Below are positions 18,728-20,458 of a stretch of 64,000 bases of DNA, piece after piece. The stretch is from Geosiphon pyriformis uo1 (taxonomy: Eukaryota > Fungi > Glomeromycota), in the NCBI GenBank assembly GCA_016748015.1, contig JAAOMT010000515.1, forward strand, positions 227,730 to 291,729, in the 5' to 3' direction. Position numbers and translations under genes: made by a program. Within the stretch, counting starts at the first letter, position 1. Each line of letters opens with the position of its first letter. The notes below the pieces were generated by a model. It ran no database searches. It had not been told where the DNA came from and worked only from the letters and a program-made list of their open reading frames with translations.

Positions 18728-18859
18728 AATCAGTCTTTGAAACAATAAGATGGAAAAGATATAGGAATATTAGATTTTTTGAGCTATCATTGTTATGAAA
18801 GTATATATGTTTTTTCAAATAGTTGTGGTTATTGAAATATTTGATATTTATCGAATCAC

Positions 18860-18985
18860 CAATGAGGCTTTTGTTAGCTCTATAGTATACGAATGGCTTG
18901 AGTCGAACTCTGATAGATAGATAATGTTATCTATTAATAGCCATCGCCTGAATCATCATATGTTCAAGTGGTGCCTCCCCAAACA
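18860..18985 (-). ncRNA. Putative omegaRNA scaffold of the IS607/Fanzor element
   Basis: Lies directly 3' of the TnpB fragment. Nested stems: GAGGC/GCCTC, CTTGAA/TTCAGG, ATGGCT/AGCCAT, ATAGATAA/TTATCTAT, GAGT-TCG-ACTC. Identity is inferred from position. Confidence 0.5.
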
Positions 18986-19044
18986 GTTAATTTGATTTTT
19001 GAAGAAAAAAACATATGATATACTTTCAAATTGTAAACAATCAT

Positions 19045-19160
19045 TTCAAGAAATATTTCACATGCACCATTAATATTTTTATCTATAAAAAGACCATATT
19101 GCTTACATTTAAGATATTAGTTTAGTTGTCAATCCATTCACATCAATTGCATGTTTAGCA
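19045..19160 (-). pseudogene. tnpB: TnpB/Fanzor C-terminal fragment (Zn ribbon + RuvC-III)
   Basis: TCN*CEWIDN (19154-19125), then after a frameshift KCKQYGLFIDKNINGACEIFL (19110-19048), versus consensus TCxxCG...FxCxxCGLxxDRDxNGARNIxL. The rest of the nuclease is deleted. Confidence 0.75.
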
Positions 19161-19289
19161 TTAAACTTCAATTTTTGTTATAACTACAAGTAAGTAAATA
19201 TCTATAAAGCAACAAATTTTGTATACAAATTTATATTCAATATATATTAATAATAAAGTTATGAATATTTGAATTTAAAGGGGAAATTC

Positions 19290-19900
19290 TAATTTTTGCA
19301 TCTGACAAATAAAGATGGTATTAATTGCCAAAATATCTTCAGTCAACTCTTGGGCTGCAGTAATAGATGTTAATGCATCATCATCATCATCATCATCTAA
19401 GTCAACTGTGATGATTTTTGTACCATTGAAAAAAAAAATGTGTTCTAAAAGGTTGTATGCAAATGAAAGAATTATCATGGTAAACAACCACAACTTATTT
19501 AAAAGATATTAATGTGATATATAGAATGAATAAGGTTCAAAAATCAAAAATAATTCTGTGACCATTCTTCAATGTGAGAATTCCAATAGGGTTTTAAGGC
19601 TGAATCTCTTGAAATTGATTCCACTGGCAGCATCAGTGATGATTTGGTAAGAAGAATAGAGCTTTTAGAGATGTTTTTTCGGCCATTTGAGATCCTATCG
19701 TTGTTTTGAGCTCAAAGCTCGAATTTAAATATAGCCACAGGATCTAAAGGTTTGAGTGGGAGTTTTAGCAGTTGTGAAGACATTTTTTAGATTATAAAGA
19801 CGAACTCCACCCAAATTTCACATAGCACTTAATTTTCCTTGGACGAAGGGTTCTGGAAGAGACTCCAATCTGTTTGGATGCTTGATGAGCAGAAAAGAGG
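19290..19900 (-). pseudogene. tnpA: IS607 TnpA (MerR-type HTH + serine recombinase) pseudogene
   Basis: Conceptual translation: SAHQASKQIGVSSRTLR/QGKLSAM*NLGGVRLYNL...YI*IRALSSKQR*DL...YQIITDAASGINFKRFSLKTLLE...MVTE[59 nt]VVVVYHDN/SFAYNLLEHIFFFNGTKIITVD...AAQELTEDILAINTIFICQMQ. This is collinear with the IS607 TnpA consensus (GVSxxTLR, GGxRxY, YARVSSxKQxxDL, ITDIGSGINFKR, EVVVAHRDRL, QELxEDLLSI). Confidence 0.88.
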
Positions 19901-20458
19901 ATTACTTTTTAAAATGTTTTAACATATTTTTTTAAACATTATTTGTATCTTTTTCAAGTTTGCTAGAAAGCTTTGAGTTTCGTTTATAAGTAGAGACAAT
20001 TGATATTCATGAGCAGAAAGATGTAAGCAAGGACAAGAAAATTATAGGATCGCAAATAATATTTATAAGTTGGAAAAAGCAATAAAATAAACGAAACAGG
20101 AAAAAAAAATCATTGATCGATGCTTGCATAACTATTATTTAATAGGCAATGGTCTTTGATATTTTATTAATAAAAGGTTTAACCAGAAGCATTAAGCTTG
20201 TGAATGAAATCTACATTCCTCATTAAACATAATAAAGAATGAAATCGACTAAAACTTTGATAACCAAATTTCCAATGAAAGAAAATTCTTTTCATTTTTG
20301 TGAATACACATTTTTCACCAATTAATTGGTCACCAAAATCTCGGGTCACGAGTAAATTTTTCCTCATAAATGTAAAGTTAATCCCAACCATTTGGATCCT
20401 TTATTATCTCATCTTTTGAATCAAAGTTTAATATTTCAAAAAGTCCTACACTATCAAT

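Follow-up and report, generated by a model that had tools for sequence, protein, structure and literature searches.

Probable remains of an IS607-type transposon with a Fanzor2 nuclease gene between two lipase-like genes of Geosiphon pyriformis

What occupies the apparently intergenic DNA between two lipase-like genes of the glomeromycete Geosiphon pyriformis uo1? The stretch analyzed here, referred to as the window, comprises 64,000 nucleotides (nt) of contig JAAOMT010000515.1 (positions 227,730 to 291,729, forward strand), and all positions are counted from its first letter. We propose, with a probability of about 0.92, that the minus strand of the window at ~20150-18889 carries a pseudocopy of a eukaryotic IS607-type transposon (IS607EU), non-functional and with an internal deletion, which once encoded the recombinase TnpA and a Fanzor2 nuclease. 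Fanzor2/IS607EU elements are already known, and the Geosiphon relic is a further member. An initial annotation, made from the sequence alone, had described a dead IS607-type element in a fungal genome at 18850-19950, with a TnpA relic that a deletion separates from the C-terminal remainder of a TnpB-superfamily nuclease, both on one strand. This description holds: the neighbors are spliced Lipase_3 genes, all of the quoted peptides were found on the minus strand when three frames of 18800-20050 were translated, and the copy, with 6 in-frame stops, frameshifts and ~1.2 kb deleted, does nothing now. The locus was placed correctly, but its bounds were not, since the element starts ~200 nt further 5' and ends at ~18889. 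Its parts, in the order in which the element would have been read, are as follows.

~20150-18889, minus strand: IS607EU/Fanzor2 relic of 1.26 kb between two lipase-like genes (probable)
19906..20150, minus strand: 5' non-coding left end, upstream of the tnpA start (boundary approximate, ±15 nt)
19843..19905, minus strand: remnant of the N-terminal MerR-type helix-turn-helix (HTH) of TnpA, in a frame that differs from that of the catalytic part
19296..19841, minus strand: relic of the serine-recombinase catalytic domain of TnpA, with 6 in-frame stops and a frame switch at ~19494-19465
19185..19295, minus strand: junction or deletion scar, from which ~1.2 kb is gone (the last part of tnpA and, from the nuclease gene, the WED/REC/RuvC-I portion)
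19036..19184, minus strand: probable Fanzor2/TnpB C-terminal remnant in two frames (RuvC-II Glu, Zn ribbon, RuvC-III)
18889..19035, minus strand: 3' non-coding tail, with a terminal block at ~18975-18889

The TnpA relic

The TnpA relic is genuine and covers almost all of the protein. Its HTH piece (…ASKQIGVSSRTLR), at 19890-19843 in one frame, aligns with residues 5-20 of the intact TnpA of L066 (69% over 16 amino acids [aa]), a 2.25-kb metagenomic contig carrying an intact tnpA and a nuclease gene, and with positions 4-21 of a hidden Markov model (HMM) of eight bacterial IS607 TnpAs; the Pfam MerR model, applied to this piece alone, gives only an E value of 0.091. A second frame, at 19841-19296, contains GGVRLY, IRALSS, ITDAASGINFKR and QELTEDILAI. 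The sequence IRALSS, which has a stop on either side, is the broken catalytic motif and the counterpart of YARVSS. VVVVYHD, at 19494-19474, is back in the first (HTH) frame, and the relic as a whole is interrupted by 6 in-frame stops and by no fewer than 2-3 frameshifts. The succession of HTH, catalytic region and C-terminal QELTEDILAI that had been claimed earlier is thus seen on the minus strand, and the position of the HTH, N-terminal to the catalytic domain, is the IS607 order, inverted relative to resolvases. A (GAT)7 microsatellite, read as a run of Asp, lies inside the relic at 19376-19397; this insert matches the longer GAT run of the copy on contig C387 only as a simple repeat.

Our references were eight annotated bacterial IS607 tnpA genes, seven of them with their tnpB. 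When the eight TnpAs were compared with the whole 64-kb window by tblastn, all eight had their best match at 19290-19900 on the minus strand, in colinear alignments with E values from 1.8e-6 to 0.27. The HMM of the same proteins returned one domain, of 24.2 bits, covering model positions 26-183 of 207 at 19841-19299. The relic matches residues 26-188 of the L066 TnpA with 77.4 bits (E = 8e-19) and the TnpA of a second locus, L062, with an E value of 7e-17; the maximum reached by 500 dinucleotide-preserving shuffles of the relic was 24.3 bits. Both intact proteins carry Pfam MerR and Resolvase domains and pass the 110-bit cut-off of the IS607 TnpA profile NF033518 (L066, 160.3 bits; L062, 132.7 bits). 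In the NF033518 search of the Geosiphon genome, the window copy lay below this curated cut-off and was not reported, as expected because pseudogenes are read in one frame. Similarly, Pfam returned nothing significant for eight stop-free pieces of the window, because the pieces are too short.

Sister copies, element ends and the nuclease remnant

The window copy belongs to a large family of copies. The assembly searched amounts to 128.3 Mb in 792 contigs, and the genome searches read it exon by exon, through stops but not through frameshifts, so that the counts are lower bounds. The NF033518 profile found at least 63 TnpA-like stretches (best score 80.9 bits, none reaching the cut-off), the PF07282 profile at least 82 Zn-ribbon stretches, with sister copies passing its cut-off, and a protein search with a sister nuclease exon at least 141 nuclease relic matches. 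NF040570 returned 45 stretches, none over its cut-off and with a longest open frame of ~200 codons. More than 15 pairs of tnpA followed by a nuclease gene, 1.1-1.4 kb apart on one strand, show that the two genes are linked in sister copies, and with so many TnpA and nuclease relics genome-wide, many of them paired, the earlier proposal that this lineage hosts or hosted an IS607-Fanzor2 family is well founded. The accompanying hope that intact copies would give a new nuclease was disappointed: most copies have stops, and no intact one was found in this genome.

The sister nucleases fall into two types. Those of type a, with 39-47% guanine plus cytosine (G+C), read …CGNIQRIGGS…DRDENGA; those of type b read …CGWI.EKLGGKK…NIDRDVNGA and appear to contain short spliceosomal introns, and it is type b that the window remnant resembles. 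The least decayed nuclease copies of the genome, L048 (C701:383000-390000, minus) and L049 (C404:441500-448500, plus), are of type b and each have two apparent short spliceosomal introns inside conserved motifs and at least one premature stop. The type-a tnpA relics (L029, L031, L032 and L035-L039) have 44-47% G+C in a genome of 29.5% G+C, compared with the host-like composition of the window relic; two or more waves of entry or amplification, differing in age, may lie behind this. The window's own contig carries a second nuclease Zn-ribbon relic, ~41 kb past the window end (C625:332664-332876, plus strand), which matches the sister exon with an E value of 8e-15 and contains 2 stops. N-terminal to the nuclease core, sister copies and their relatives have basic stretches that resemble nuclear localization signals (NLSs; e.g., KRKGK…RRKRQ).

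Both ends of the window copy are set by sister copies, which are 67-73% identical to the relic in DNA. By blastn and in alignments, the similarity runs from ~20146 down to 18889, a unit of ~1.26 kb that amounts to roughly half of an intact element. At the left end, the copy on C387 matches window positions 20146-19411 (69%, E = 2e-81), and that on C596 matches 20096-19292 (67%, E = 1e-77); in alignment A1, similarity begins near the block GCCTATTAAAT at ~20147. At the other end, similarity among the copies stops directly after …CAAGCCATTCGT, the end of a terminal block of ~85 nt that is 78-84% identical to the copies on C634, C387 and C571 and better kept than the coding parts. This block is presumably the right end of the element together with the remnant of its guide-RNA scaffold. 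The fold of the 3' region (18885-19045) is mildly better than that of shuffles, with a z-score of only -2.28; no consensus structure or covariation was supported among 4 copies, and Rfam contains no family that matches the block. A high-copy miniature inverted-repeat transposable element was also considered for it and rejected, as only one other match exists genome-wide. IS607 elements lack terminal inverted repeats and make no target duplication, and a search of the ends proposed here showed no such inverted repeat. Just beyond these ends, 18840-18849 and 20155-20164 are identical and form a 10-nt direct repeat (TTTGATATTT); in DNA of 29% G+C, it is probably a chance match. With a G+C content of 0.292, the relic does not differ from the remaining window (0.295; whole window, 29.5%), which argues that the relic is old. 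Its longest stop-free pieces measure 30-77 codons.

The nuclease remnant consists of two pieces. The first contains the RuvC-II Glu and the first CxxC (…IEV*C*TCN*C…, with TCN*C at 19154-19128; asterisks are stops), and the second contains the second Cys pair and RuvC-III (…IDKNINGA…), with KCKQYG…DKNINGACEIFL at 19110-19045; the minus-strand peptide …IDKNINGACEIFL has the same coordinates. RuvC-II Glu, Zn ribbon and RuvC-III therefore stand in the order of the family, with the second CxxC and the DRD mutated in the window. When the Zn-ribbon peptides of 12 sister copies were used in tblastn, they matched 19154-19128 and 19110-18988 with sum E values of 0.009-0.019 (type-b copies L004/L006/L007). 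The profile of these 12 peptides had its best domain in the window at 19113-19036 (independent E value, 0.026) and an adjacent, colinear domain at 19184-19122 (independent E value, 5.7). The remnant is also 44% identical over 25 aa to residues 575-599 of the L066 nuclease (E = 0.16). As DNA, 19114-18981 shows 73-80% identity with the copies on C571, C387 and C634; two of them, C571:136427-136600 and C387:38293-38514, were picked up as nuclease relics by the genome-wide search (E = 1e-4 and 3e-9). The colinear matches to the sister profile, though weak alone, bear out the nuclease end, with its Zn ribbon and RuvC-III, that the initial annotation had read here.

The large deletion between tnpA and the nuclease end, which had likewise been suggested, becomes apparent by comparison with L066. 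In that intact element, the tnpA stop and the RuvC-II Glu lie ~1.14 kb apart; in the window, only ~110 nt remain between the last TnpA-like codon and the nuclease remnant, from which we conclude that ~1.2 kb is missing. Within the junction, 19260-19211 is still 88% like the copy on C634.

Several points weigh against the reading of the locus as an IS607EU/Fanzor2 pseudocopy. The locus is unlisted in the genome family searches (PF00239, PF07282, NF033518, NF040570 and the sister nuclease exon), because frameshifts cut the relic into short pieces; since these searches are blind to frameshifts, their silence does not count against the relic. RNA-type contigs are absent from the relic, a weak negative drawn from the contigs of a few runs only. 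The element ends rest on only 2-3 diverged sister copies, and searches for terminal sub-repeats and for a target motif or duplication gave only short matches of chance quality in this AT-rich DNA. Moreover, the nuclease piece is statistically marginal by itself: it has no Pfam or whole-genome protein-search match, and a PDB search with 50 aa of it returned nothing. These nulls, together with the modest protein scores of 19184-19036, would suit a tnpA-only fragment in which a real TnpA relic is followed by a piece that resembles a nuclease by chance. We regard this as improbable. The piece is the best match in a six-frame search of the 64-kb window (128,000 translated residues), it follows the TnpA relic within ~110 nt, sharing its strand and keeping the gene order of the family, it is adjoined by another colinear piece, and its DNA is homologous to sister copies that themselves score as nuclease relics; for these reasons we accept it as the remnant of the nuclease gene.

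The history of the IS607EU/Fanzor2 copy can be reconstructed as follows. Its ancestor would have encoded two proteins, a TnpA with a MerR-type HTH and a resolvase-type catalytic domain and a Fanzor2 RNA-guided nuclease. From what is established for the family, excision and insertion of the element would have been the task of TnpA, with neither terminal inverted repeats nor target duplications, and the nuclease, guided by RNA from the element's 3' end, would have cut the vacated donor sites, whose homologous repair would have restored the copy. One copy would then have inserted between two tandem class-3 lipase-like genes of Geosiphon and decayed, losing ~1.2 kb, gaining 6 stops and several frameshifts and drifting to the base composition of the host. 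What this account has to explain is the homology, order, strand and breakage of the pieces, the family of copies and the lack of transcript contigs, all of them observed.

The relic sits between two plus-strand Lipase_3 genes, 80-300 nt away. Transcript contigs from two runs carry the upstream gene in spliced form; they end at ~18714-18807, ~80 nt from the 3' end of the relic.

17800-18807, plus strand: upstream Lipase_3-like gene, expressed, with GT..AG introns at 17939-18094 and 18501-18589

Family affinity and origin

By its sequence relationships, the family is IS607EU/Fanzor2. The best PDB match of the sister nuclease pieces is the mimivirus Fanzor2 ApmFz2 (9b0l; E = 3e-8 and 5e-9). A profile of nine stop-free sister nuclease pieces (A3), searched against 1.84 billion proteins, retrieved 11,116 relatives, the closest of which are Geosiphon fragments, a protein of Funneliformis geosporum and metagenomic proteins of 400-730 residues. 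The protein of Funneliformis geosporum, another glomeromycete, is a 99-aa partial sequence (P0009) that matches the nuclease profile with an E value of 6e-31, so the family is not confined to Geosiphon. A second profile (A4), made of 14 of the A3 matches, scores 217.5 bits against 9b0l and 96.8 bits against the next TnpB-like chain in PDB, and it retrieves 79 loci in viral contigs, several of them giant-virus-sized (up to 1-1.9 Mb). Intact relatives were found only in metagenomic and giant-virus contigs. A scan of viral contigs with a single sister TnpA piece gave nothing, while the profile-based scans succeeded; likewise, a word-based protein search with a sister TnpA piece returned only Geosiphon's own fragment, at 91% identity. 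Alignments A3 and A4, which cover sister copies and intact relatives, show little or no variation at the Fanzor-type catalytic Glu (NEAYTSKTC), in agreement with the rearranged catalytic Glu of Fanzor2, ~six residues before the Zn finger (PMC13565253). In the window, only IEV-x-C-x-TC is left of this region.

IS607EU/Fanzor2 elements of giant viruses and protists have been described (PMC3627910, PMC10530073, PMC10711439, PMC11832414, PMC13565253), among them the mimivirus copies encoding ApmFz2, ISvAR158 and ACa-1. In common with them, the Geosiphon family has tnpA ahead of a TnpB-type nuclease gene on a single strand, a Glu immediately preceding the Zn finger, a conserved 3' end that is non-coding and a eukaryotic host. 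It differs in that the window copy is dead and half deleted, in the apparent spliceosomal introns of some type-b sister copies and in its glomeromycotan host. A 2013 survey of IS607 in eukaryotes lists no fungal host, and the searchable literature names no Glomeromycota as a host of Fanzor2 or IS607; in the literature searched, we found no link of Geosiphon to Fanzor, TnpB or IS607, papers naming both Fanzor and Rhizophagus being left aside.

Among fungi, Fanzor1 is the type usually reported, and it is carried by DDE, Helitron and Crypton transposons, unlinked to a serine recombinase. Like the Geosiphon nuclease, Fanzor1 of Spizellomyces punctatus (SpuFz1, PDB 8GKH) is an RNA-guided, TnpB-derived nuclease in a fungal genome; in Geosiphon, however, the partner is an IS607 TnpA, and 8GKH is not among the PDB matches. 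With bacterial IS607 elements (H. pylori IS607, ISCbt4 and IS1535; NF033518 and NF038280), the relic family shares the TnpA architecture, the tnpA-tnpB order and several motifs (the YARVSS-type Ser, DIGSGxNFKR, KDRLxRFG and the C-terminal ELxEDIxxI), although the identity of the relic TnpA to the bacterial proteins is only 20-32%. In PDB, a better-preserved sister TnpA copy matches catalytic domains of IS607-family TnpAs (6dgc, 3ilx, 3lhf and 6dgb), and it also matches 135 plasmid records annotated as IS607 family transposase.

The best of these plasmid matches are from Nostoc and Trichormus. Geosiphon harbors Nostoc, and both facts would be expected if the relic had come recently from a bacterial IS607 of this cyanobiont or of another endobacterium, or had entered the assembly as contamination. 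Such an origin is nevertheless very improbable. The window TnpA scores 77.4 bits against L066 and only 38.1 bits against the Nostoc TnpA; the relic has the G+C content of the host and lies between spliced fungal genes on a large contig; the sister nucleases have apparent spliceosomal introns and a basic, NLS-like stretch; and the nearest relatives are found in giant-virus-sized contigs and in another glomeromycete. Furthermore, on the published view, Fanzor2 as a whole derives from cyanobacterial IS607 (PMC13565253, citing PMC10711439), which accounts for the cyanobacterial look of the plasmid matches without any local transfer.

The close intact relatives in viral contigs of up to 1-1.9 Mb bring up another origin, in which the relic would be part of an endogenized giant-virus fragment instead of a copy that transposed independently. 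We consider this to have little chance of being correct: homology to the sister copies stops at both ends of the 1.26-kb unit, host Lipase_3 genes, one of them expressed, lie within 80-300 nt, no other virus-like open reading frames (ORFs) are found nearby, and the dispersed copies have different flanks. An independently transposed IS607EU/Fanzor2 copy thus remains our preferred reading.

The nuclease frame over tnpA and the meaning of the relics

The intact relatives also draw attention to the coding layout of these elements. Long metagenomic relatives of the nuclease share a conserved N-terminal motif, P[FY]WN…KLWLPT…SWF, and the first 150-230 codons of the nuclease ORF in their contigs overlie an intact tnpA that is read in a different frame. 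Of loci L062, L063, L066-L068 and L069-L147, we compared all viral and metagenomic ones with an intact tnpA, 48 of which were distinct and passed the filter (52 under a looser filter). The nuclease frame is always +1 relative to tnpA in the 48 loci, and in 47 of them it is open for 120-235 codons ahead of the tnpA stop. Over the 9,950 tnpA codons of the looser 52-locus set, the +1 frame contains 105 stops and the +2 frame 678, with 567 expected from composition; the +1 stops are restricted to the first 0-83 tnpA codons. Even in an element with only 33% G+C in tnpA, the frame is still open for 171 codons. The first +1-frame ATG lies at a median of 70 nt past the tnpA ATG, many independent loci having it at 64-73 nt, and 19 of 47 loci have no ATG within 40 codons of the tnpA stop. 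Divergence at 4-fold degenerate sites is 0.50 in tnpA versus 0.70 in the nuclease-only region (275 of 287 pairs, which are not independent of each other).

A similar layout is found on a Nostoc plasmid. The element of Nostoc sp. PCC 7120 pCC7120alpha (NC_003276, ~148.4-150.2 kb) is among the best plasmid matches to the fungal TnpA relics and shows the same nesting and the N-terminal motifs PYWN and SWFS, although it has a prokaryotic host and stands further from the window relic than do the metagenomic relatives. In the plasmid segment examined (L149; NC_003276.1, 145642-151956), the nuclease frame is open for 578 codons from position 2810. RefSeq gives there a 392-aa "transposase" (3371-4546 of the locus) that starts near the end of tnpA and leaves the underlying tnpA remnant unannotated. 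In seven bacterial IS607 elements, by contrast, the tnpB frame is open for only 1-47 codons upstream of its start, whereas Fanzor2-clade elements keep it open across almost the whole of tnpA.

Reading PYWN… as a frame echo of the TnpA sequence TLLER, and the scarcity of +1 stops as an effect of codon usage, was dropped after the intact relatives had been compared. Dual coding is favored because the frame is open, the position of the ATG is conserved and the 4-fold sites are constrained. On balance, therefore, we lean toward a nuclease gene nested over tnpA across the IS607-Fanzor2 lineage, with its start typically ~65-70 nt after the tnpA ATG, bearing in mind that conservation of the +1 motifs is mechanically coupled to the conserved blocks of TnpA and that prokaryotic members may use non-ATG starts. 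The alignment of NF040570 to protein P0156 begins only at residue 187. In the ApmFz2 structure, the NLS, "RuvC-R" and "thumb" that would make up the N-terminal extension are seen folded (PMC11832414). The same paper, which makes no mention of tnpA, describes a folded and functional N-terminal domain (residues 53-130) that is absent from other TnpBs (PMC11832414). It appears reasonably likely that this Fanzor2-specific N-terminal extension is encoded by overprinting tnpA, the ApmFz2 locus itself lying outside the compared set. The Nostoc plasmid suggests that the nested layout arose in a cyanobacterial ancestor, and we speculate that nesting pre-adapted the lineage to eukaryotic expression from one mRNA by leaky scanning. 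The overlap is unmentioned in the text of PMC3627910, PMC10530073, PMC10711439 and its preprint, PMC11832414 and PMC13565253, whose figures may show it.

In Geosiphon, the type-a tnpA relics have 21 stops per 1,000 codons in the +1 frame, 19 in the TnpA frame and 62 in the +2 frame, counts that fit an ancestor in which both frames were coding. The window contains an echo of the +1-frame motif at 19711-19556 on the minus strand, in a copy that is too decayed for the overlap to be judged.

By itself, the relic is of little weight: it is dead, no intact sibling was found in the genome, and it offers no ready-made nuclease. As a member of its family, it indicates that a serine-recombinase IS607/Fanzor2 element was once amplified to well over 100 copies in an early-diverging fungus related to the arbuscular mycorrhizal fungi. 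To our knowledge, IS607EU is the only eukaryotic serine-recombinase transposon, and its occurrence in Geosiphon and Funneliformis widens its host range. Such relics are dated "fossils" with which one can ask how frequently fungi acquired these elements, whether out of giant viruses or out of bacteria. That tnpA and the nuclease gene overlap may matter more than the relic itself: if true, it would explain the source of the Fanzor2-specific N-terminal domain and would affect the annotation of Fanzor2 genes and their trimming for genome editing.

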